A DNA stretch of 64,000 nt from Ophelia neglecta (GCA_965285935.1 OZ260661.1:95976001-96040000); one strand, 5' to 3'; shown: positions 1 to 59,520, counted from the first letter of the stretch. A program made the numbers and translations. Notes: a model not told the origin generated them from the sequence alone.

Positions 1-1055
1 CTGTGGAGTATATATATATCCCCAAGGAGCGTAATCATTCAAGAAATAATGGGACTTACACAGCAACCCAGTAGTCCTACACATTGTTCTATTAAAAAGG
101 TTGAAAAATGAAGCCGAATGAAGAAAATATTGTGGGATATAGAAAGAAATCGCTTTCAGGTTTAAGGAATGCGTTTTGGGCGTACGTGGTTCCTACACCC
201 CTAACGGGTCAACTATGGTTGTGCACAATAATTGGGGGCGGGGGGGGGGGGGGCTGCGAAATAAGTATTTTGCCTTGAAAGGTGAACCATGTTTTTGTCG
301 TTCAAGGAATCAAGCAGTGCACACCCTCACCAGAGACATTGAAAGAGTCTCTATCTGGAAGCCCCAGATGTTGGCAGTTAATTTTAGTGTCCAAGTAAGC
401 ACTTTTTCAGGCACTTGGAGGCGCTGATGACGGTCTGACGGCGGCGCTGATGGTACCGGGGTCGAGCACTATGAGAATCTGTGCTGGGCTGTTTGTACTA
501 GGCCTGAGTATATGAATGTGGCATAAATTATCGTGGTTTGTGTGACACACAGAAGTATGTAAAATTTAAAGCCACTGCAAGAAAGAGTGATAAATGTACA
601 ACACATAATATTTAAAAATAAATGATGTCCCTTTTTTCGAGGCACACCGATACGGAAGGGTTTATGCCAATTTTCCCGTGAAAACACATCGAGCTTACCA
701 AAGTTGGCCTATGACACCGCTAGTCGGTATTAAACTACGTTAATTAAAAAGTTGAAAGCGCTAGTGACAACCATGTATAAGGAAATAAGCAGCGAACCTA
801 TAGTTATCTGTGTTATACCCGAAATATATCCCTTATATTTCACCACGTTCGCAGTGTAGATTTTGGCAGAATTTACAATTGTTTTTGGGGGACATATTTG
901 GCCTATTAAACACGATGCTTTGCTGTTTACAAGTCTCTTGTCTGCCTTCTAAACGTCGTGATCTGACGGCTCGAAATCATCTACCAGTTCATATTTCTTA
1001 TTAAATTAAACAGACTTGTACACAGCATAGCATCTTGTTCTTTCTTCAAACCTAC

Positions 1056-2207
1056 TGTGGGGAACGAAGTGATCACATCCTCGTCATGACGTAGAAGAGC
1101 AAATCCCGTGCCATCGCCATCAGTCCGATAGACGGTGTACCAGACTAGAACCCGGGCACAGGATGAGGAAAAACAAGTCTCCTCCCCAGTGTGTCGGGAC
1201 GCCCCTGCGACAGGTCCATTTTCAAAGCTTGGTTGAACTTTTTCAGGTTTTTTGTTCCAGGAGTTCTGTTCTGAGGAATGCTCGTCACTGCCATCCGCCT
1301 GGTGCGAGGCGGCGTCATGCTCCTCTTCTTCTCCTAGCTCTTCACGTAGCTCACGCGAGTCGACATCTGCAATTTCTTCAGAATCAGCCTCGTGTGAGCT
1401 TTTTTTTGAACTCTCATGTGAGACTTTTTTATCGCAATTTCTTTCAGACTCCGAACTCGAGCTTCTGTCTAGAGCGGAACTACTCTCAGACCTCGGCCAT
1501 TCCTCAGAACTCGAATCGAGAATGCTGGATCGGCCGCTGCCGGACAAGCCGCTGCCGGACAAGCCGCTGCCGGAGCCGGAGCCGCTGCCGGAGCCGCTGC
1601 CGGAGCCGCTGCCGGAGCCGCTGCCGGAGCCGCTGCCGGAGCCGCTGCCGGAGCCGCTGCCGGAGCCGCTGCCGTACACCTCGCTGTCGGAGCCGCTGCC
1701 ATACACGGCGCTGTCAAAGAGCTCATCAAGCCAGCGACTTAGCGGTCCTGGGCTGTCCCGAGAATGTCCACGATGCCTTGGCCGCCCCCCTCGGTGAGGG
1801 CCACCATGACCAGCTATTCGCAAAGCATGTCTTCGTGTCCTTCCTTCCCCCGACAATGGCGGAAAAGCCCACCCGTCACCCTTAACGAGTTTCCAAATGT
1901 CTTGGTCTTCATCTGGTTTTACATATTTGGGACACGATGGGCACAGCTGTCCGTCGACCATTTTGGTCCCTTTCACCCGGCACTTGGTTCCGGTCATTCC
2001 TCGGGGTGGTTTCATAACCACCGCCACCAGCAGAATGGCCACCACTGCCATGGAGACAAAGATTCCAATGCCCAACAAGAAGTCGATCCCATTGTTTTGC
2101 TTCGAAGTGCTCCTATCTGACCGAGATCGGTCTTTCTTTGGTACGTTTTCTTCATTAGAAAACCCCCCAATCTTGTAGGATTTGTCCATTCCGGAAGCGT
2201 GTCCCAT
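1056..2207 (-). CDS. KCNMB/CaKB-like paralog A, first coding exon (N-terminus, TM1, expanded extracellular loop with Ser-Gly repeat); second exon not in window
   Basis: ATG at 2207. Hydrophobic TM (FLLGIGIFVSMAVVAILLVAVV), then TKCRV...CPSC...TCFSSSCARVLVWY...FALLRHDEDVITSFPT, which aligns with the KCNMB loop motif (C-x-x-V-x-V...ALLHxDE...). Followed by a phase-0 donor ACA|GTAGGT at 1056/1055, the same position as the donor of the + strand gene. Confidence 0.8.
1533..1700 (-). repeat. Coding 12-bp tandem repeat (GCCGCTGCCGGA on +) encoding a (Gly-Ser)n tract
   Basis: Near-perfect 12-mer array; 1564-1674 gives 37 alternating G/S codons on the - strand. Confidence 0.95.
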
Positions 2208-2973
2208 CACATAGGAGTCCTTAATATGAATAATGACAGTGCGCTATGTTTTCAACATGTTATACGTGACCAGTCGACCAATACTTAGGTCAAATGAATG
2301 TCATTCTCTTGTTATTGAATAATCAATTATTGTATAATCAATTGAACAATGAAGGTTGTAGCAACCCGAAACTGTTGTTTATGTCACTGCCAAACTAAGC
2401 TTTCTTGGCCCTAACATTTTTCATCCTACAATGGACGAGCAGAACAAGTTTCTATAAATCAACCATGCAGTAATATAAACACAATCTAACAAAACACTAA
2501 TCTCTTGCCATTGTTATTTGAATAGAAAATCATTTGTTCCTAAATTGTCAAAAAATTGTATAGGCTTATAGCATTTGGGAACTTAGTGCCTAATCACTTT
2601 GTCGACGACTTATTGTGCATGGTCTTAGCTTTAACAGATCAATAAATTCATGTCGCTTATGAATGTTTATACATATATTTGTATATAAGATACACTGAAT
2701 AAAATTAATGAACTATAAACGTTTCACATAAATCTTTCGGGCGTGAAGCAGTTTTATGAACTCTGTCACTCATACTACTCAGTTTATGCTTACGAACAAA
2801 AGATCGTTGGCGCGCTAGCGCAATTTTTTTTATAGATACATGGCTAAAATCTTCAGGGTCATGGCCAGTACATAAATGCGAACTGATTAAGTTATAAGAA
2901 AATATTGGAAATATTCAGGTACCAGGTTTTATCCAGAATGAAATATGCAGGACAGCATCATGGAGACAACTAC

Positions 2974-3240
2974 CTAAGTATATAGGGGGCGTACAGAAAG
3001 GTGCATATTTTGTGATTCCATTAAATGTCTATTCAAATTTGACCTTGACCTAAATAAATGTTTAAGATCAACTTGAAGCTCTTTATGATCTATCACCAGG
3101 TCTAGACATTCTTGTTTTTGGTACGCGAGAAGTGTCTTTGACTGAGACCGAAAAGCAGGAGTAGGTTCGTATCTTTGCAGCAGCTCGGAGTTGTACACAG
3201 GAACATCGCCTTTCAGGGCCTTGTACACCATAAACGAATG
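2974..3240 (-). mobile_element. Decayed 3' fragment of an L2/CR1-type LINE ORF2
   Basis: Translation VYKALKGDVPVYNSELLQRYEPTPAFRSQSKTLL resembles the conserved L2-clade C-terminal motif (YKALxGxAPxYLxELLxxYxPxRxLRS..LL). Confidence 0.7.
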
Positions 3241-3415
3241 CTAGAAATCAATGGGGTTTGTCCCACTTTCAAAATCACAGCCGTGTAATTGTGGAAGGTA
3301 ACCTGGCGTTGACAGCTGTTGTGCAATAGATTAGTCTAATATTGTTCTTACTTGCTATAAAGGATTATCGTTATTAGGAAATAGTTTATTAAAGACTACC
3401 ACCTTCTTTACTTAC

Positions 3416-4099
3416 CTTTGATATATGCTTCGCTGATTTCTCATTGTGCTCCACTGTTTGTATAATTGCCTTCACTTTTTGAGTCGATTTGCCAGTTTTT
3501 CTGACATATTTCACAAGGACTTGGGCGCAGATCGTAGGGACGCAGGGGCTAGTGTTAGACCGACCATCAGCTTTTCCATAATCAGCGCCTTTTTGGCTCC
3601 CATCTGTGTTATTCTTATTACTGATTGGTCCAGTACCCTCGTGAAGCAACATAAGTAGGTCACTTTCCAAAAAGGCATCTTCATTGCAAGGGGGGCAGAA
3701 GTTGCCTTTGAGTGTAGAAGTCGTCTGCACCGTACAACTTGTTGGTCGGGGCCCCACATTAAAGTTAATGTTTGTCGTCACAATTACCACGCAGATTATT
3801 CCGGCTAAAAACCCAAAAACCAGCAGCAGGTCACAGTGGCGACTTGCTGTTTGTGTGACCTTTGTTTTCCCTCTGTCACCACTCAATTGTGTCGCATTCC
3901 CATTGTTGACGGCCTGACTTGGACAACTTTGCCTCACTGGCTCGCTTCTTGCCCGTCTTTTTTTATTTTTGGAGTTTTCCAGTCTTGAGTATCGTCTTAC
4001 CTTTCCCATGTGATAGCTATCAGTTTCGTTGTCGTGTGATCCTGGATTAATTGTCAATTTCTTTTGGCCTGAATAGCCATATCTTACCCTGGCTATCAT
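3416..4099 (-). CDS. KCNMB/CaKB-like paralog B, first coding exon (long basic N-terminus, TM1, loop with 5 Cys); second exon not in window
   Basis: ATG at 4099. TM LLLVFGFLAGIICVVIVTT, then TSCTV...CPPC...PCVPTICAQVLVKY...KAII. Perfect phase-0 donor AAG|GTAAGT at 3416/3415 at the homologous position. Confidence 0.8.
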
Positions 4100-6403: not shown

Positions 6404-7884
6404 GTCTCTTCTCACCGAGACGGGTTGTAAGCAATGTAAACCAAGTTTCTGAACTCAGTCAAGACCACCAACGCTTTTGAGTCAAAATTTCCTGTAAAAA
6501 AGCAGACTGTTCTGTTTCGGAATCTTGGATTCTTTTAAGGTTCTTATCACTGAAGCAACCCAATATTGTTAAACAAGAGTCGGAGAGTGGCTAAACGACA
6601 GACTAAAAAATTTATTTCCAGGACGGCCCTAGACTTGTTGCACAATATTGTTATCTCAAGTTAGAAACACCCATTCTTATCAAATACTGCATAATCTAAA
6701 TTACAGTAAAATTACATAAATTCAGACAGAAAAAGCCTTGGTCTTAAATTCAAAAACACTAATTGACCCCACCATTTTAAAATCCGCAGGGAGGCTATTC
6801 CATTTAAAGCCAGTGGTACGTCTGACCAGGATAACATTGTAATCTTGTAACTACCAAATTATCTACACTACTTCCTGTTACAAGTGGATATCTGTCTTTT
6901 ACCTTATAGCTAATTGCAAGCATTCAACATTATTTCAACACTTAGGAGACATGCATTTATGCAATACTACTAACTTGTAGCTAAGACAGGTCTCTAAAGT
7001 GTGCAACATCAAGATTGGAACGAATTGATAGATCCACAATAGAAAGGATAGCCTTGTTCTCTTAGCATTGTAGTCTAGTCTGCAAATATTCAGTTATTCC
7101 GAAGTACCAAAAAAATTATATTCATTATCAATGAATAATTGCCAAAGAGACCTATACAATAAATTCTTATCGTGTCATGATTAAGAAAAGCCCTTTTTCT
7201 AAACAAAAAATTGAGTCTGGAATAAATTGTCTTTAACCCTGCATACCTACATGTGCCCTGCGTGGAGGTTACTGTCGGTAGGTCCTATAACATATGACAC
7301 ATTGGTTTACAAATAACCCAGTACCCATCAAGACTTGACTTTTGACATTGAAACTTCTTGGGAATTTTAGTGTTTTCTAGTGTGGAGTTTATGGTACGTA
7401 CGTGAAAAAGCGGAGGCTCGGAGCCTTGCAGAGGTAAATCCCCAAATTAGAACAGAGCACTAGACTTATCAAACATGTCCCCAACCCTTGATACAGTTTA
7501 CCTAATTAGCAGATGAGATGATATCATCATAACTAAACTACACCATTTACCGATGTCATATTTATTGCCCTTTAAGGCTTTATCACGAGGCAATTGAAAC
7601 AAAGCACTGCCGGTCCGATGAACTCCTGGGTTCATATATACGCAAACATATTCATAAACTCTTATTAGCGAGGATTAGCAGTTTCTCTCTCACCTCGCTC
7701 ATGTGGCTTTCTATATGCATCAAACATATTTGTTTTTACAGGAATTCCTGATAATTCCTGATAACCAATTTTCTGTCACACAATTACATGTATATAGACA
7801 TATCGTTATTGCATATAAAAATCAAAGATCAACTGGGCCCTATTGTTGCTAATTGGCTGAGAATTGAAAGTTTGAACATTGTCA

Positions 7885-8450
7885 CATCGGCTATTTCCGC
7901 ACTTTCGGCACTTAGGCGATTTTTCATTTTCGGCAATTAAGCTTCCTCCTGCATATTCGAGTATTTACTAGGCACATTCACTAAATTCGGCACTTTCGCT
8001 ACCTTCAGCGCAATCTTCAATTTAGGGCCATAGCCTCCCTGTGGTTTCATGTTGGAAATTAAAGCTATCCACTTTCGGTGTTTGTGCATGAAAATACGAT
8101 ATATTCTTCAGTAGGCGGTTTAGCTACATTTTTTACTGCCTTGTTGTTGTACAGCTTCCTACATTGTTGACCATTTCGGCACTTTCGCTACGTTCAGCAC
8201 ATTAATATTCGCTACATTCGACACTTATACTTATGTGCAGTTTATACAATTGACAATACGTAACATTCTGTAATTTCGGTACATTCTATTCTTTCTGCAA
8301 ATTCTCCTCTTTCTACTGGTCTAAAACTTTTGCCTTTTTCGCTGTCTTCGATTCAATCTGTACGTTTATGGCCTTGTTCACCTTTTACTCTTTCCATTCT
8401 TAATTTCGTCCAATTTTCGCCATTTCGATGCTTTCTTCGCTTTCTATATT
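7885..8450. repeat. Degenerate ~9-bp-period repeat (TTCGGCACT/TTCGCTAC-like)
   Basis: Many recurrences of ttcggcac, tttcgc and ttcgctac at roughly 9-bp-multiple spacing; strongly pyrimidine-skewed. Confidence 0.55.
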
Positions 8451-8573
8451 TCCGGTAAGTCCTACCGTACGTTACCTAATATAATATTATAGTCTAATAC
8501 AAATATTTCTAGATTTAACATATTTATGGCTCGTAGGAATATATTGGCCAGTTTCCAAATCAAGGCCCGATTG

Positions 8574-8817
8574 GGCATACTGGAAAAGCTGATACGAAAT
8601 ACCAGATACGAGACGCAGATACGAGATACGAGGTGTTTAAAACGTAGCCATATGGACTAGGTTAGGGTTAGGGTGAAGGATAAAGTAAGTTATGGTTTAG
8701 TTAGGTTGCTAGCTTAACCCTACCCCTTACCCTGTCATAATCCAACTCAATCTTAATTTTTCGTATCTGTGTATCTCGTATTTCCTTCGTATTTCGTATC
8801 AGGTTTTCCAGTATGCC
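8574..8817. mobile_element. Non-autonomous Mutator/MULE-like MITE with 9-bp TSD
   Basis: TIRs GGCATACTGGAAAAGCTGATACGAAATAC / GTATTTCGTATCAGGTTTTCCAGTATGCC. Exact flanking direct repeat GCCCGATTG at 8565-8573 and 8818-8826. Internal GATACGA subrepeats and TTAGGG-like tracts. Confidence 0.88.
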
Positions 8818-11800
8818 GCCCGATTGGGGGTGAACATACCATAGGGAGGATATAACGCTGATACCGCTCACACTGATAGCTAAGAAATGAGTATTAATAC
8901 GTTGATCCTAAGGGATGGGGTTTGGATGAAGGGCAAACCTGAAGCTATCTGGGAATGATTAAGCCTTTTAAGTTGTAGATAGAACCTTCTTGCCGCCTAT
9001 ATATCTAGCTGTAAGCACTAAATATTTATTTAAAATTTATATATTAGACGTCTGAATTCAAATCGCCATTAGGTTAATTGATTCTGCAAGTTCTCCATAA
9101 CTCGCCTTCCTGTGGTTTGAAATGCTGTCATCATTGTTTGATCTAAAATGATGTTTCAAATATAGCAGGACACCAATGTATCGTTGAAACCAAATATCGG
9201 CAGAATCTTGCTGAATAACATTATTCTACAGGGAATGGAGTCAAAGAGATCAGCGAGATCACTGGACAGAACAAGTGGATATAAGATAAGCCTGAATCAC
9301 TCGTTATGGATCATCATTATTATAATTTTATTAAAATGAGGCTTAATTTGGCAAAATGTGAGAACTACAGGACTAAGAAATGTACAGAACCTACTGAACA
9401 TGTTTATGTGTTAATTTGATCTTTTAAGGTTATTGGGTGTTATCTATGGGATTTGAAACGAGGATCTTTATACCGGTATTAGAAATATGGCCTATAGTAT
9501 GAGACTGGATTGTATACTACCGTCCGGAAGGGAGAACTGGCCACTGACATGTTTGGTGATGGACCAACCTGACTCCTTGCAGGGTAATATGGGAGGTGTG
9601 CTTAAGACATGCAGATCACATGTGACCAAACTTAGCAGGCATAAAACACGCCATATAACAGGATATTAACAGTAAGCCACACCTGTGGCTTTCTCGGGGC
9701 GTGGTCACACTCGTGGGTCTTCGTCTTCAATCTCATCCTTTGGTTTCGGTTGATCTAGACCCATTTTTTATTGGTGCTGATCACTTCACTGGTCACGGTT
9801 ATTAAGACTGACCCTGAGCGTCATGAATTGGACCCTCCTCTCCATGGACCGTCCCCTTTGCCGCATGTTAAAAAAGTCAGTTATTGAAAGGAGGATACAC
9901 TTCAAGGAGTGAGAAGTGGGCCCTCCTCCTCTAGTGCCGCCCTCTATGGCTAGTGGCCAAAAAATTGGTGCATTGAGAGGAAGATTCACCTCAAGGGGCT
10001 CTGAGTTAATTTAAAATGCGCGGATTACTTTTGAACAACTGCAAGATGGCATCAATAAAAATGGGCAGCACCACTAAAAATGATTCTAATCTGAAAATAC
10101 CTGCAGCCCCCGGGCTATCCGTCAACAGCAAGCAACCAAACGGTACTCAGTAAGCATATTAGTTGTGGTGTGCCCCGGGGGTGGGAGCACTGACCATGCA
10201 TAATTTAAGTCATGGAGTCCAAGCTGGAGACTAAAATTAGGAGTCCATCTAAAAGCGAATGGCAGCGAATGGCCCAAACGGCTTTTATAGCATAGCTTAT
10301 AATGGGGGTTTCATTGTAACATTAAAGGGAAAAGTGAGGGTCTTTATTATAGCATATTGGACGCTCATGATTTTCATATGCCTTTAGGTTTTATGGATCT
10401 AGGAATTGACTGGCCCTAGGGCAGGATCAAGGTGGACAAGGCGGACATGTTAAGGTAATTGCAGGACAAAATGTTGGAGGCCTATTTATCTCACCTGTTA
10501 AGGTCGGCGGGAGGAGGGGGGGGGGGGGTAGAAATAAGTGACATTCCGAGTTATCTTCTTATGGATTTCAAGAGGTTATTTATAAAATGTTTGCGCATGG
10601 CAGTACAAGCCGCCCCCCCGCCCCCCCTCCCTCTCCTACCAGGCAGTGTACACGTACAAAATGTGAAAGGCCGAAGCGTACGTCAAGACTCCGTCGCCAA
10701 GGCGTGTTTGGAAAGGTGCTACCTACTGCCTTTTTCACCAGAGAGTGTGTAGCTCATTGTGACACTATACGTCTGCATCCCTTGTGGCGCTCTGGGCGGA
10801 CTAGCCACTCATTATACCTGAATGTGAGGCAGAAAGCTACAAGGGCTATTGTTGCTCGTTGGATTATGGATTTATCTTGTATACTTATGTTCGTGTGTAT
10901 GTTTGTTTAATGTCCGGCCTGCAGTCCACTGTGTGGTTAACAAAAGTGCAGCCCTCAACCATCGTGATGTCAGACGCTCACCAATACACAATGCTGTCTT
11001 TACATTTTTGTGCAAAAAAAGTTTTTTTTAGATGATTGGGCCTAAATAAATACCCTTGTTCACACTGTAATCAACTTTCCATCCAAATCATTCCAAATCG
11101 TTACAGGCGTCATGAGGTAATAAGTCTGCCAGGGATCTATTTTTACTTATATCACATATTTTATTTTATGTAGTTCATCGTTATTATCTAATTATTCGAC
11201 CATCTTAATGTTTTAATAAGACAAATACTACTGACTCCAACCGTGCTTTAAATAAAGCAACAATAATCAGTGCAGTAATCTCCATAATTGCAATGAAACA
11301 ATATTTTCAACTTGACCGAGAAACAAGCATTATTTTTTACACAAAAAACAGCCCCAGCCAGAAAGATCAAATGGGCCACCCCTAAGAGTTGAGTGACTAG
11401 GTTTCCAAGCGATAGCATCTGTCAATCCTCATAAAACATCCCAAATCAAGTCCGTGTCTTAAAAGCGTTCAATGTTTTAACAATAGCTGACCAAGACATC
11501 CACGCTGACACTGACCTAATTCGGCTTGCAGCTAACTGGATGCAAAGCATTATGTGTTCTCAGGTATAATCTTATTTTGTACTCGCATGGTTAAGAATCT
11601 GTTCGCGTGAATGTCCTAAGGTCAGGATTTTGGAGGCGTTAACGGATACAAGCTATGCCCGTAATTCATTAGCTGTTGAAAACCAGAGTGGTGATCCTTT
11701 ACGGAAAGACCCTCCGGCAAGTCTGGTCATACAAGCCCAGCCACCGGCTGTGAAAGTCAAGATTGTTGACCCATCAACGTCAAGTCTTGTACCACGTGCG

Positions 11801-12979
11801 CGGCAAAAGGCAAGAAAAACGGGCGGCGATACCTGGCAGATAAAGACAAAGCACTAATCAAGAAAAGTCATTTAAATGTGCTCGGAATCACTAGGAAACG
11901 GCAGTCACATGCTCCTCTCATCTCTACGTGAATCCTCAGATCCCAAACAATAAGTATAGGCCTATACAGGTCTGAATGATGAACAAATAACCCGTATTAA
12001 CGCTTTTCTTGTAGCTTGGCGTGTAATAGAAGATGTTGAAATATATAAAATTACTAGGCTTATAGGGCTGGCCTAAAATATTCAGATATGTTTAATACTT
12101 CAGTAATCTATCCGAACTTGCATGCACACAACGAGCTTGACGTCCAATTCAGTTGAGTACATGCGGCCTTCCATATTTCGCGTCCTTGTTTTCAGCTTAA
12201 AACATCACATCATGCGTTAGTGAGTGTTTTTAACCGTAACGTTTGTTTAAATCAAATAATAGGCCTATTATTAATATAGATTTACATAATTCTTCGACAT
12301 AATTTATTTAGACATTGATGGTGATGGCCAAAAGGGGTAACCCATAGTGAGGAGGGACCCGTCAATGGGCTCCGAGACGAATTTCGATGGTGAGCTCTAT
12401 TCAACTGATCGATCATAATATGGGCAGCTCCACCAAGAATGTTTCTAAAAATGGTTGTACATTTTATTACCCCTCCAGGACGTGCCGTTTATTGTCATAT
12501 TAGTTGTGTAGAATGAACAGTTGGGTAGGCTTCAAGATTACCGTGCAATGCAAAAGGCCTAAAGGCCCAATGAATTTGGAGGGCCTGAATCATGTTTGAG
12601 GCCCCGTAAAATGGTTCCAATTGGCTGGGACAACCTATTAATATATCTGTTTATACCTGCACTGTCAGCGATACCGGAAATACAGATTACATTTATTTAA
12701 TATTTAAAAACATACGCATAAAAAACATCCTTTAAGAGTAAAATGCGTGACCATAGTTCGGGAGGTGTCGCCGGCGGGTTCGTTGAACCCCGGGCTGCGG
12801 GCTGGAACATATGCTATGGAATTGTAACACAAGATTGCGATCGACCACCTGTATCACACTGTTAGTCTTTTCGACCTACACAATTCAAGCTCTCAGCCGT
12901 CACCTTAACTTCCTGCAGTGTTCAATACGCCAGCTTTTATAAACATAGATATCATATAGTGTAGGGAGTGATATAGAGG

Positions 12980-13663
12980 CATATGTCTGATTGGAATTGT
13001 GCGTAGATTAGTTTGTTGTTTTGCAGCACCTTGCATTGAGAAGCCAATAACGAGGTTTATATACTAACCAGGAGTCCGGCAGCTGCAGTCAGCGACAATA
13101 AATACGCCGCCTGCTGCCTGAGATGTAGATACAGCTAATGCATTTGCTCGCAGCCGACATCGGTGAACAGGATCGATTACTGCGAGTCGGGCGCGAATCT
13201 CGTTTCGAGCGAGCAGACTCCCGCTCAGAGCCACCGAGGCTCTCCTCACACTGCACAGGGAGCACACTACTTCAATGGCCGCACAATTGAAAGTTGCCCT
13301 TTCCTGCTTTAGTCGGCAGTTTCTATTAGATCTGCTTGTAAGCTTTAAGCGATGATACTGAGCTATACTAAGTTTGCCGCCCTCTTGCGCCAGCATTGTT
13401 AGTTTGTTTGGCTGCAGCCCGCGTTAGATAGTGTAGGACAGCAACTGTGCCGTATCAGGAGCTCGAACGTCTGTTGTGCATTTACGGGCGGGGCTTGTCA
13501 GTTGACAAAGGTGTACCTGCTACTCGATTCACAAGGATTCAATATGGTCGAGGAGAGTTTGGATAGCAACAGCAATACCGCGGACAAGGGCAATAGCGGG
13601 AAGCTGGGCTAAAGACTTGGCAAGGGAATCGCCTTTTAGTGTCCTTCGTGAGTAATATTGGAA
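12980..13663 (+). promoter_or_regulatory. Probable promoter / GC-rich 5' UTR of the + strand KCNMB-like gene
   Basis: Local rise in GC/CpG just upstream of the ATG; CCAAT boxes (ATTGG ~12990, CCAAT ~13044) and TATA-like AT boxes (~13056, ~13097). TSS not determined. Confidence 0.45.
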
Positions 13664-14059
13664 ATGTACGCAGCTGCCATGGGAACCGAGGTGGCTACCT
13701 CTTCCAATTTGCCAACCCAGGATTTCAAAACGCGAGCAACCAACTGTGTACTGCTTACTGTCACCGTGATCTGCATCTGTATACTGGTCGCCTGCGGCGT
13801 GATGATAGTTAGGGAATATGCGCTGGCAAAGTCCTACGAGGAGACCACCTGCCAGATAAAAGATGTAACGAGAGCTACAAATGACTCCTGCAGGTATTGT
13901 GCAGATGCCAAGGATAAGTCCAAGGAGAAGGGGCCAAATGCTTGTCATAAAGCTGACTTTCCTTGTGTCAAAGTCACGGTGACGTATGATCACAAGGGAA
14001 GGACGGAGAATGCTTTGCTTCATATTGACAGTATACAGGCCGTAGGAGCTCACAGTCAA
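13664..14059 (+). CDS. Calcium-activated potassium (BK) channel beta subunit-like protein (KCNMB/CaKB family), coding exon 1
   Basis: ATG at 13664. TM1 (CVLLTVTVICICILVACGVMIV), then EETTCQI...CRYC...C...FPCVKVTVTY...NALLHID, matching the KCNMB loop (cf. beta4 YPCVQVYVN...RALLHSDE). Phase-0 donor CAA|GTAGGT at 14059/14060. Confidence 0.92.
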
Positions 14060-38400: not shown

Positions 38401-38830
38401 TGATGTTTAAATCGGCAAATATTTCATCCGTTTTAAACAGGTTTTCGTATCGTTGGTTTTTAAAATAGGCAAAATATCGCCTTATAAGGATCCGATGTTT
38501 TGTCAAATTTGATTTCGGGACTTAATATCCTAATGTACCTCTCCCGTGGGTGTAACATTTCATCCGGAATGTGGGATGCTAGTAATTTCCAAGCCGGGAT
38601 AATATTGGGGTCCATGTTTTGGTAATTTTGAGTGACATTCAGCAGTCAAAAGGAGACCCCAGGCTTTGGAGCTGTAACGATTTAGTTTCTTCATGGAAAT
38701 ACGCATGTCTGTATTTTCAAACCCTTAAAAAAGGATGTGCAAAATGCAAAAAGCGTGGATTTGAGAAGATTTTGGTAACGTGCTGACGATAGGCGTTATA
38801 TGCTTATATGTATGTCCTTTTTCTGGGATG

Positions 38831-39390
38831 TGTGACGAGTATGTGGTGGCTATTCATGTCCTTTATTACCTCGGTATGTGACGAGTATCAGATGGCTATT
38901 CATGTCCTTTATTACCTCGGTATGTGACGAGTATCAGATGGCTATTCATGTCCTTTATCACCTGGGTATGTGACGAGTATCTAGGGCTATTCATGTCCTT
39001 TATCACCTGGGTATGTGACGAGTATCTAGGGCTATTCATGTCCTTTATCACCCGGGGTATGTGACGAGTATCTGTGGGCTATTCATGTCCTTTATCACCC
39101 GGGGTATGTGACGAGTATCTAGGGCTATTCATAGTTGGTTGTGTGACGAGTATCTGTGGGCTATTCATGTTCTTTATCGCCCGGGGTATGTGACGAGTAT
39201 CTAGGGCTATTCATGGTTGGTTGTGTGACGAGTATCTGTGGGCTATTCATGTCCTTTATCACCCGGGGTATGTGACGAGTATCTAGGGCTATTCATGGTT
39301 GGTTGTGTGACGAGTATCTGTGGGCTATTAATGTTCTTTATCAGCTGGGGTATGAGAAGATTATCTATGGGCTGGTCATGCTGATATCGC
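38831..39390. repeat. Minisatellite, ~12 units of 35-47 bp with a TGTGACGAGTAT...GGCTATTCAT core
   Basis: Units directly visible; the later units alternate long and short. Confidence 0.95.
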
Positions 39391-47500: not shown

Positions 47501-50019
47501 AAAATAATCATACTTTCGTCCATTTTTCTTAACTATGATTTATAAATTGTTTTCATTGTATTAAGAAATGTGCAAGGGTCTGTTCGGAAAGAACTTAAAA
47601 CAATTTATTAAACAAAAGGAGTTATAATCTTTGAAATTTAAAAACAATATATAACTAAAATATCCAATGGGAATGGCTCACTCTTTATTGTTAGGGCATC
47701 TTCACGTGTTTTAAAAGTTGTAGAGAATCCCACCAAACCTGAGGATGTTGTCATTTACGACTCATAAGGCACGCTTATATTTCCAACAACAACAAAATCA
47801 TATAATATCCTGAATACTAAATAGTTCTTAAGACTCTATGAAAAGAATTTTAGACCAAATATCAAGATATGCTGATAAGTATTGAGGCAGGAAAAACAAT
47901 ACCAAGAAAAGCTGACGGCTGAGGGGCTCCTACCTAGAATCATAGTCCTGCCATCAGAGCCTCGGCCGAGAGCCAACATAAAAGGTGGGCGATATAGGCC
48001 CGAGGCTTATTACTATGATGAAGTACTGTGAGCACTATATATAGGCCTGTATGCGTTTATATAATCACTATTTATATCAAAGAATTCACCATGGTTATTA
48101 GGCTAGGCTATTTTTATTTGTTTTCGCGTTGAATGTCAATATTGCTCTGTTAAATATAGGCCTATGGCTACCAATAAAATTGAATTAATGGTACGCCAGG
48201 AATTTAATCATCCAAGACAAATCTTTACCTATATTTTCATTTATCGTACGAACAATTATAGGCCGAATGCTCATATGACGGGGTCAATTGAACCATGCCG
48301 AAGGTTTGTTGGGATCCCGGTAAAATGCAACTGCCACACACCATTGAATATGATGATTGAATAAAGAAATTTGTGTATATGAATAAAATCGAGGCGAAGC
48401 TCAGGGTTTGTGAATCCGAGTGGCAAAAACGTCATGATATGTTTACAAGTGTTATCCCTCCCGACTGTTGGTGCTCTACTACATTTATTATTCTTAAAAG
48501 ATACGGGGATGGAGAGGTGATTGAGCCGCTGGAAGCCGGAAGGGGAGGAGGGGGTCGGAGTAGGTACGGCGAAGCATGAGCTGGGATGTAGGCTACGTGC
48601 CTACAAGGTAATGTTTCGAGTTGATATGCAAGGGTCTTTTAAAAGATATTTTGATCGACATAAAGAGGCTTGCAAAATGTTTGGGCATTGAACTTGCCTC
48701 AAACGACAATGCAGGGCTCAATACATTCCGCCTAAGATGAACTTCAATGAGCTTTACATCTTCTGACCAAATTGTATAAATTGCCATTTTTTTTATTGAA
48801 ACTATTTTAGCCACGAACACACCAGTTTCCGCAAGACGCGTTATGTGCAGTTAAAAGCAAATTGTCTGTGGTGACTGCCCCCTGACCTTGCTCTTGGTTG
48901 TGCAGTCTTTTATGGCCGCACAATATGTGTGGGCCCGATCCAATCCGAGAGGGTCTCGGCCCGTGACCTCATAGCCGACAGCTACTGTCTGTCTATACGT
49001 GCTCAACCTTTATATTTCTTCGACAGGCGCTTCCTGCCTCAAGCCAGAGCAGCAATGTCCTGTCAGCAAACCGGCGGTATGACACAACGACCAAACATGG
49101 CCGGAGGCCAGCTATATATGCCTTCATAGACACAATCTGGGATATAAGAATCTGGTTGCTTGCATCCCAGACACACTGTACAGAGATAATATTCCCCCAG
49201 CGACTAACCGTCTGGGCACCAGTCAACCGGGAATGCTATCACGCAGTCATGTGTAAGAAATAGACTCCCATACAAAATAGTTACTATTCCTATCCACAGT
49301 CGTTCCAGTTTATTTTTTTTAAAAATCCTTTCAAAAGGTCAAACAACAGGTCCCATAATCGATTTTTTTCAGCGCTAAAAACGTATAAGCCTAGGACTAT
49401 AGAGCCAATTCATTTATTTTCTTAATAAATAAGTAGGCCTATATTTTATAACATTACATACAGAAACTCCCCTGTTTATTACTTTAAGGGTGTGCACGCT
49501 TTCTGTAGACCCATCTCACTGCGGCCTTCTGGAAAAAGTTCAGCAAGGTTTGGTTCCCACACCGCCCGGCGGACATACTTGTGTATATGAATACATGGTG
49601 AATTCAAATCAAGCCCTCATTTTGTCTGAATATTTCAACTTTAAGCAGAATATTGTCGTCTAGTTCGCTCGCACCAGGAGCTTAATGCAAATATTGGGCT
49701 AGATCCAATGTAACCAATCAGGGTACATGAAATCGAAATCATTGATCAATTGCACCCGTTGAAATTACGGGTGGGGTGGGAAAGTGAACAACAAACATAG
49801 AACTAATTTCAAACCCCGAAATAATGCGACCCTGTTGTTTTAGCCAGGTATAAGCAAAATAAAAGAGTGCTTGTCGAGTGCTTATCGGTCCATGGTTCAT
49901 ATAGATTGAGAGGGTTTGTGGGGTACTGATGGGTTTGCTACCAATATTCGTTGCTTAAACAAATTTGAATTTGAATGACAAAACATGAGAATTGAAAAAC
50001 TTCTTTTCTTTTTTTTCAG

Positions 50020-50703
50020 TGTTCATTCGACGTGTGTATGAAGCGCTATTCAGAAAATAAAGCCGCTGTCGACAAATTCGCGGAGCCCTGGGAAGCGAAA
50101 CAAAAGTCGAGAGAGTCCTTCCAATGTTTTTACGATACATTTAAAATGAAAGATGTTATAACGGAAAAGAAGAACACAAAGTCCGACGTAGTCCATAGTA
50201 TGCTGTGGCCGTCAATAGTTATCATAATCTGCGGTACTATTTTCCTGCGCCTTGAGATGCGCAGGCGTGGACTTACTTTTTGGGGAACAGGAGAGAAAGA
50301 CGGCAAAGCAGCGCCAAATCCAAAGCCAAAATACGGAGCGGAAAATAACACACGAAACGGAAAAGGAGCCCACCAGACTTTGTTACAAACATCACAACAC
50401 TGTGAATACCCAAAATGCAAACTGTTGAAAAACGCAGAGACTCCTGTTATATCAAGTTCCTTATCAGATCTGGACAGAATCAAACCACTTGACAAGAGAA
50501 CTATTGCATTTGCCGAGGACCAATGCAAATTGTCAACAAGTATAAGTGCTGACAGGCTGCAAAACCAAATGGTGAATCCTGAAGTGCATCGCGACAATAT
50601 CACTACAAGGAACATTGATAAATTTCGTCAGGATTCGGCCAAATCGGATTCCCCGACTGGCTCTCAGGGCAGTAGGGCAATGGGCATGGAAACTCCAGTA
50701 TGA
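50020..50703 (+). CDS. KCNMB/CaKB-like protein, coding exon 2 (rest of loop, TM2, long C-terminal tail)
   Basis: CSFDVC...N...V...W...FQCFY...DVI...VVHSMLWPSIVIIICG matches the KCNMB C-terminal half (cf. beta4 CSYIPPC...FTCYF...DVLL...LLHCFLWP). Ends ETPV followed by TGA TGA. Confidence 0.92.
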   Translation, partial: CSFDVCMKRYSENKAAVDKFAEPWEAKQKSRESFQCFYDTFKMKDVITEKKNTKSDVVHSMLWPSIVIIICGTIFLRLEMRRRGLTFWGTGEKDGKAAPNPKPKYGAENNTRNGKGAHQTLLQTSQHCEYPKCKLLKNAETPVISSSLSDLDRIKPLDKRTIAFAEDQCKLSTSISADRLQNQMVNPEVHRDNITTRNIDKFRQDSAKSDSPTGSQGSRAMGMETPV

Positions 50704-58599: not shown

Positions 58600-59520
58600 T
58601 CACGACACAACCAACCCGATAACAATCAGTCAACAATTAGACAACAACCACACAACAACCAGACAACAACCAGACAACAACTAGACAACAACCAGACAAC
58701 AACCAGACAACAACTAGACAACAACCAGACAACAAACTGAACCAAACAAAAAAACAGACAACAACCGACAGCCATCTAACGACCACCAGACAACAACCAG
58801 ACAAGGACCAGAGACACATGAAACAACCAAACAACAACCTGACAACCAGAAACAACATGAACGAACCAGAAACACGCAGACAACCACCAGGCAACAATGA
58901 TCCAATCTAAAAACAACCAGAAACAACAAGAAACAACCAACCAACAACCTGACAACAAACTGAACCAACCAGAACACCCAGAAACAACCACCAGACAAAA
59001 ACCAGATTACAAACTGACAGAACCAGAAACAACCTTAGTCAACCCAAAAAACAACCTGACCACAAGGAGATAATAACCGGAAACAAATTGAATCACCCAT
59101 AAGCATCCAAACAACCACCAGACAACAATCAGATACAACCCGGCTAAAATAAACATACTGCAACCGGGCATCGACCAGACAACAACATGAAAACAACCAG
59201 TCAAAGCCTGATTACAACCCGTAACAATATGAATAAAAAAACAACCTTACGACAACGAGAAAATAACCAGAAACCACAATACAGCAACCAGACAACAATA
59301 AATAACATGCCTTGCTGTAACAACTGTACTACAACCAGGCAAAGACCAGAAAAAAACCTGAAAGCGACCAGTAACAACATGAATCACCCAAACAACAACC
59401 TGACAACAACGAGACAACAGCCAGAAACTACTCGAACCAACCACAAACATCAAGACAACAATCAGATAAAAATCAGAAACAACCCGGATGACGCAACCGA
59501 ACTGCAACCGGGAATAGAGC
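58600..59520. repeat. Degenerate A/C-rich satellite based on an 11-bp unit (ACCAGACAACA)
   Basis: Near-perfect units at 58640-58735, decaying outward; extreme strand asymmetry generates spurious ORFs. Confidence 0.9.

Follow-up and report, generated by a model that had tools for sequence, protein, structure and literature searches.

Tandem Minus-Strand Exons at the Left End of the Window

The DNA described here, a stretch of 64,000 nucleotides from Ophelia neglecta (GCA_965285935.1 OZ260661.1:95976001-96040000), referred to below at its whole length as the window, carries near its left edge two minus-strand exons, A and B, which are candidate alternative first exons of a BK-beta-like gene of the CaKB/TipE superfamily. 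A paralog of conventional structure, designated C-type, lies on the plus strand. The window is eukaryotic and free of N runs; its G+C content is approximately 36–45% in most 2-kb segments and 49% in the first. The preliminary description of this DNA had reported two exons, each encoding an N-terminus, the first transmembrane segment (TM1), and the first five conserved cysteines of the extracellular loop, and each ending at a phase-0 GT donor; the open reading frames (ORFs), the transmembrane segments, and the cysteine spacing bore out both the coordinates and the description. The features of this region are given below, with a slash marking each exon–intron boundary.

3416..4099, minus strand: candidate variable first exon A; its translation comprises the start codon ATG, an 88-residue cytosolic N-terminus, TM1 at residues 89-107, and the first five loop cysteines
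3410..3415, minus strand: 5' splice site of exon A, AAG/GTAAGT, phase 0, read from the sequence; GTAA is kept in the A-type relative L001
1056..2207, minus strand: candidate variable first exon B; its ORF comprises ATG, the N-terminus, TM1 at residues 47-65, and five conserved loop cysteines
1050..1055, minus strand: 5' splice site of exon B, ACA/GTAGGT, phase 0, read from the sequence; the B-type exon of the relative L005 has ACG/GTAGGT at the same position
1575..1700, minus strand: 12-nucleotide tandem repeat that gives the exon B loop its (Gly-Ser)n run (Tandem Repeats Finder; period 12, 10.2 copies)
2208..3415, minus strand: spacer between A and B, presumably an intron in A transcripts and the promoter region for B, with stops in all three frames
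1..1055, minus strand: start of the intron 3' of exon B, negative for a constant exon by tblastn, hidden Markov model (HMM), and regular-expression searches

The two exons lie 1.2 kb apart on the same strand, and both ORFs are intact, with 228 codons in A and 384 in B counted from their own ATG. Each contains one strong hydrophobic segment of 19-23 residues, with a Kyte-Doolittle mean of 2.8-3.0 over 19 residues. The loop cysteines are arranged in the same register in both exons (C1-C2 = 13, C2-C3 = 3, a variable spacer, and C4-C5 = 5), and the C4-C5 pair stands just before a V.V.Y strand. The loop of exon B includes an insert of 250 residues, rich in Gly-Ser and acidic residues, which adds one extra cysteine. 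The donors at 3416 and 1056 were both as the preliminary description had given them, and their position is homologous to that of the donor of the plus-strand paralog. The spacer contains an ORF (2974-3231, minus strand), which we take to resemble the tail of ORF2 of a long interspersed nuclear element (LINE); no second copy of the spacer or of this LINE-tail-like ORF was detected within the window.

Profile and sequence searches were carried out with single exons as queries, one at a time. Second exons were sought in the window by tblastn with the window's own exon 2 at word size 2, by a signature regular expression, by an HMM of nine second exons from lophotrochozoans, and by tblastn with the constant exons of a relative. 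None of these searches detected second-exon-like sequence in 1-1055 or 2208-3415, in agreement with the earlier claim that no second exon is present between A and B or in the 1,055 bases to the left of B. In the whole 64 kb there is exactly one second exon, at 50020, and it is part of the plus-strand paralog.

Conservation of Exons A and B

A word-indexed search returned a single relative of exon A, the protein P0001, which is encoded by an A-type copy (L001) on a 1.2-kb Logan contig of sample ERR14113986. The DNA alignment of exon A with L001 showed similarity that begins exactly at the ATG and stops directly behind the donor GTAA, with unalignable flanks on both sides. Exon A and P0001 are 48% identical overall, with a synonymous divergence (dS) of 1.22 and a ratio of nonsynonymous to synonymous divergence (dN/dS) of 0.33. 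The first 21 residues (MIARVRYGYSGQKKLTINPGS; window 4037-4099, minus strand; L001 106-168) are identical in the two species, and the rest is approximately 45% identical; the peptides read through past the donor are unrelated between the two species. The purifying selection, the retention of ATG and GTAA, and the unrelated read-through tails thus indicate that exon A is a constrained coding exon with a constrained donor, and the relaxed dN/dS that the preliminary description had associated with a pseudo-exon was not observed for this exon, its value of 0.33 at a dS of 1.2 being that of purifying selection. The N-terminal peptide of exon A, which is short, hydrophobic and then basic, and highly constrained, recalls the inactivation peptides of BK beta2 and beta3a.

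An exhaustive search with a profile of exon A, P0001, and exon B against 1.84 billion representatives returned one further protein, P0010, which comes from an ENA assembly and represents a B-type exon. This protein has the CPSC and C..CARVLV motifs and a Gly-Ser/acidic insert as in exon B, to which it is 26% identical, and it reads through at "..PT/VG", which corresponds to the donor position of exon B. The insert of the B-type loop is thus present in both species (in the window and in L005 at 7648-8847), and the two insert sequences are not alignable. By analogy, the B-type loop might be proteoglycan-like: its Ser-Gly runs beside acidic residues resemble glycosaminoglycan attachment sites. 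No spliced full-length relative of A or B was detected among the 1.84 billion representatives or in the word-indexed search, and an A-type profile scan of metagenomes gave no match. ORF-based gene calls on metagenome contigs show first exons only as unconnected ORFs.

A Syntenic Locus with Three First Exons and a Single Constant Region

The exon that encodes P0010 lies on a 25.2-kb contig (L005 and L009) from a third species. The elements listed below were found on one strand of this contig, in this order.

7648-8847: B-type first exon, donor ACG/GTAGGT, phase 0
9807-10289: second first exon, X, donor CAG/GTTAGT, phase 0
11243-12478: third first exon, Y, donor CAG/GTACAT, phase 0
13389-13523: exon 2a (CSYSVC .. 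FDC), acceptor tttcag/TGC, phase 0
13616-13804: exon 2b (..ILWPSLF.. and the second transmembrane segment, TM2)
from 13986: tail exon

Each of the three first exons has a transmembrane segment, loop cysteines, and a phase-0 donor (at 8848, 10290, and 12479), and the gaps between elements are approximately 0.9-1.0 kb. Exon 2a was matched by the second-exon HMM with E=4e-11 and by Pfam CaKB with E=0.0039 at profile positions 106-147, which is the correct region. No further first or second exons were detected on the rest of the 25.2-kb contig, and the genes past the constant region (Mat89Bb-like on the other strand, zf-CCCH, and EFCAB10-like) are all unrelated. In both the window and L005, a C-type first exon is located head-to-head 5' of the array, demonstrating synteny of the two loci. 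Exon X has a stop 9 nucleotides 5' of its ATG and lacks an in-frame acceptor, and can therefore be only a first coding exon, not an internal one. Three first exons with one constant region thus imply either that the constant region is shared or that they are orphans; all three are intact. Direct repeats, whether intergenic or intronic, were absent from both this array and that of the window, indicating that the arrays are not recent duplications.

Taken together, these data suggest that A and B are tandem alternative first exons of one BK-beta-like gene whose shared constant exons lie off the window, a reading to which we assign a probability of about 0.65. The features of a variable-first-exon cluster that were seen are the tandem, same-strand, paralogous first exons with their own start codons (A and B here; B-type, X, and Y in L005), the donor of the same phase on each of them, and the absence of a constant exon between the variable exons. 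The most economical reading of the two loci is that A and B belong to an array orthologous to that of L005; the layout would then continue left of the window, probably with more variable exons between exon B and the constant exons. The distance from the L005 B-type donor to exon 2a is 4.5 kb, and the window sequence extends only 1,055 bases left past exon B. The proposal of the preliminary description that A and B splice to one shared exon is partly supported by the L005/L009 layout of an array with a single constant region as far as the sharing is concerned; the relative differs from it in that the constant part there consists of three exons (2a, 2b, and tail), not one.

An alternative reading, that only one of A and B works as a first exon and the other is a duplicated orphan, either a pseudo-exon or the source of a truncated single-pass protein, draws on the fact that duplication of a first exon without the rest of its gene is common in tandem duplication, on the absence of an A-type exon from L005, and on the position of A and B, taken alone, under the Pfam thresholds. 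This explanation is opposed by the intactness of both ORFs, by the dN/dS of exon A and the conservation of its ATG, donor, and first 21 residues, by the B-type donor, which is kept in a species where the exon is only 26% identical, and by read-through tails that are not conserved, and we consider it improbable.

The L005 locus bears on the possibility that A and B are the first exons of two separate genes, nested or interleaved, with private second exons further left. The intron of A would then span all or part of gene B, and long introns do occur, as in the C-type gene (36 kb); moreover, TipE-family clusters contain separate and sometimes nested genes (PMC3240667), and the left flank lies outside the window. 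In the syntenic relative, however, the three first exons have just one constant region behind them, the genes after it are unrelated, and the 25-kb contig has no other second exon, making two such genes unlikely, if slightly less so than an orphan exon.

An AG located 12 nucleotides 5' of the exon B ATG (window 2219-2222, minus strand) could serve as an in-frame, phase-0 acceptor for the exon A donor, and is probably there by chance. Splicing of A to B through it would give a tandem A+B fusion, and the AG (2221-2220) does follow a moderately pyrimidine-rich tract, with an exon start at 2219 that is in frame with both the A donor and the B ATG. In such a fusion, however, the N-terminus of B would be extracellular and its TM1 inverted, and an in-frame AG within 36 nucleotides is expected by chance in AT-rich sequence. 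The equivalent exon X of L005, with its stop 5' of the ATG, has no in-frame acceptor. We regard the fusion as by far the least probable of the alternatives.

Relationship to the CaKB Family

The plus-strand C-type paralog provides the reference for the assignment of A and B to this family. Its two exons are as follows.

13664..14041, plus strand: first exon of the head-to-head C-type paralog; Pfam CaKB E=4.9e-4 at profile positions 10-96; orthologs P0012-P0017
50020..50703, plus strand: second (last) exon of the C-type paralog, with three cysteines, TM2, and a tail ending in ETPV; Pfam CaKB 37.1 bits, E=3.3e-9

The family cut-off of Pfam CaKB (PF03185) is 25.1 bits, and the match of the C-type first exon to the N-terminal half of CaKB (E=4.9e-4) falls below it. 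The donor of the first exon, GCC/GTAGGA, is in phase 0 at a position homologous to the donors of A and B, and the second exon begins at the phase-0 acceptor tttcag/TGT at 50020 (orthologs P0002-P0009). The second exon shows a dN/dS of 0.15 at a dS of 0.97 against L003, the species pair being the same as for exon A. The cysteine register of the C-type first exon is as in A and B, except that C4-C5 = 7; the C1-C2 spacing of 13, the C2-C3 spacing of 3, and the position of the C4-C5 pair before V.V.Y are common to A, B, P0001, the L005 B-type exon, and the C-type exon. Five cysteines of the eight-cysteine loop pattern are located in the first exons and the three later ones in exon 2 or 2a. With regard to the two-pass topology, A and B each provide an N-terminus and one strong transmembrane segment; in L005 an exon with TM2 comes after the B-type exon, and in the window none accompanies A or B.

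A C-type-only HMM gave weak scores with the variable exons (Y, 0.0018; P0001, 0.021; L005 B-type, 0.081; X, 0.59; window A, 4.9) and no hit with window B; four variable exons were among its six best non-C-type matches in 5,293 six-frame fragments. When compared with the PDB, the C-type profile gave a weak match to the KCNMB4 loop (5y7l, E=1.1), and the A/B profile gave Gly-Ser linker artefacts only. What ties A and B to CaKB is architecture and position, not statistics: homology is indicated because the cysteine spacing and the intron position and phase are identical and because a CaKB-like constant exon stands behind the B-type exon of L005.

Several observations weigh against a shared-constant-exon array that contains A and B. 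Exons A and B alone gave no Pfam CaKB match at E<=10, the scan of P0001 gave noise only, and the comparison of the A/B and C-type first-exon profiles was weak (hhalign P=0.0016, probability 16%). The constant exons of Ophelia neglecta lie outside the window, and their sharing is extrapolated from one other species; in every species, the array is known from genomic sequence alone. Errors in L005 are possible because the contig is a 4x assembly whose C-type exon carries a frameshift, and no A-type exon was found there. The C-type contigs of more distant species (L006, L007, L008, and L010-L012) showed no visible array within 4-10 kb; 5' of the C-type first exon there is nothing or satellite DNA. 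Finally, no k-mer was shared above shuffles in the sequences 5' of the five variable exons, a result that is still compatible with separate promoters.

The C-Type Paralog and Other Features of the Window

The C-type gene is a conventional lophotrochozoan CaKB gene, which resembles A and B in cysteine register and in intron position and phase and lies in their head-to-head neighbourhood. It differs from the array in having one first exon per second exon, and it was found in many species (P0002-P0009, P0012-P0017, L006, L007, and L010-L012). The implied C-type intron in the window (14042-50019) is approximately 36 kb long and contains no ORF of at least 110 residues, whereas elsewhere the span from the first to the last exon is 2.4-3.3 kb (L006, L007, and L012), with the first exon split in two. 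A first-exon-like fragment at 49490-49654 on the plus strand, 365 nucleotides 5' of exon 2, had no significant match to any first-exon profile or sequence and was taken as a chance resemblance.

The C-type tail ends in ETPV in several species (window 50689-50703; P0002-P0004; L012 13099-14106), resembling a class I PDZ-binding motif. The constant tail of the L005 array gene has PPDY and PPTY motifs and a terminal TPCNA. Judging from these tails, the C-type and array paralogs may use different cytosolic partners.

The leech protein HELRODRAFT_162326 (P0006; L004 10001-12145, Helobdella robusta KB097143.1) combines a CaKB second exon with an N-terminus that lacks TM1; the true first exon lies at a distance and was apparently overlooked by the automatic model. 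On the contig of P0014 (ENA ERZ26222911), two large ORFs lie on the opposite strand approximately 6 kb 5' of the C-type first exon, one of 543 residues (no Pfam match on record) and a second, of 970 residues, that continues past the contig end. They sit where the array is found in the window and L005, and might represent either additional variable exons or a transposon. In L008 (129-8725, minus strand), a satellite-like tandem repeat of approximately 8.6 kb lies 5' of the C-type first exon and has been gene-called as several ORFs of 140-400 residues.

Two further repeats in the window lie outside the genes discussed here. A tandem repeat block at 38823-39380 has nested periods of approximately 46, 82, and 137 nucleotides, and an 11-nucleotide A/C-rich repeat, present in approximately 40 copies at 58607-59034, causes a strong local AT skew.

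Proposed Mechanism and Comparison with Known Systems

If A and B share constant exons as proposed, transcription would start 5' of one chosen variable exon, each variable exon presumably having its own promoter, and the donor of the chosen exon would bypass any variable exons further downstream and splice to the first acceptor in the single constant set. This set, located beyond the left edge of the window, would supply the last three loop cysteines, TM2, and the cytosolic tail. The products would be two-pass membrane auxiliary subunits that share TM2 and the tail and differ in N-terminus, TM1 helix, and outer loop, and they would be expected to modulate Slo1-type (or Nav-type) channels. In a fuller interpretation, for and against which we see about equal weight, the locus would be a lophotrochozoan counterpart of the protocadherin and UGT1A loci, in which promoter choice swaps the N-terminus, TM1, and most of the loop; the 21-residue peptide of exon A would perhaps act in gating or inactivation, and cell-type-specific BK or Nav gating and outer-vestibule pharmacology would be tuned in this way by a single gene.

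BK beta and TipE-type subunits determine how major excitability channels gate and inactivate and how sensitive they are to toxins, and the diversity of vertebrate BK beta subunits comes from four genes together with short N-terminal splice variants. Cassette-like exchange of TM1 and the outer loop would, if true, be a different route to subunit diversity and, among invertebrates, a rare instance of the multiple-variable-first-exon design. The resulting natural chimeras, with a constant TM2 and tail and a varied N-terminus, TM1, and loop, could be used to map parts of the subunit to properties of the channel. For annotation, this arrangement would explain genes missed by automatic models, such as the Helobdella protein without TM1.

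Among known systems, the multiple-variable-first-exon clusters of the clustered protocadherins, UGT1A, and GCNT2 (PMC1885805, PMC3325998, PMC7811963) resemble the array in having large paralogous first exons in one orientation, each encoding an N-terminal part that faces ligands or partners and includes membrane or extracellular sequence, and each ending at a 5' splice site, together with one constant set. The array differs from them in that it is small (two exons in the window and three in the relative), showed no promoter element in common, and is known only from genomic DNA; in addition, its constant part completes a disulfide-bonded loop, so the variable and constant parts must co-fold. 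The insect TipE/Teh genes, which are complete and separate (PMC3240667), likewise form a genomic cluster; they encode paralogous two-pass auxiliary subunits with loops of variable length and a distant relationship to BK beta, but the array has more first exons than second exons.

The closest likeness within the superfamily is vertebrate KCNMB3 (BK beta3a-d), in which four alternative N-terminal first exons are joined to a shared exon 2, giving differing inactivation behaviour (PMC2442174). As in the array, the first exons have their own start codons, the downstream exons are common, and the cytosolic N-termini vary. In KCNMB3, however, the alternative exons contribute no more than a short N-terminal peptide of one to a few tens of residues, and neither TM1 nor any of the loop varies, whereas the variable exons described here add TM1 and about two thirds of the loop, with five of the eight expected cysteines, and are large exons, of 161-412 codons in the two species, that are paralogous to one another. 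The preliminary description had called such an architecture unfamiliar in the KCNMB/TipE family; this holds for the array itself, no description of which for BK-beta-like or TipE-like genes was found in the literature searched, but not for alternative first exons as such, given KCNMB3. Alternative first exons are thus already known in the family, and the new element here would be the swapping of TM1 and most of the loop as part of the first exon.

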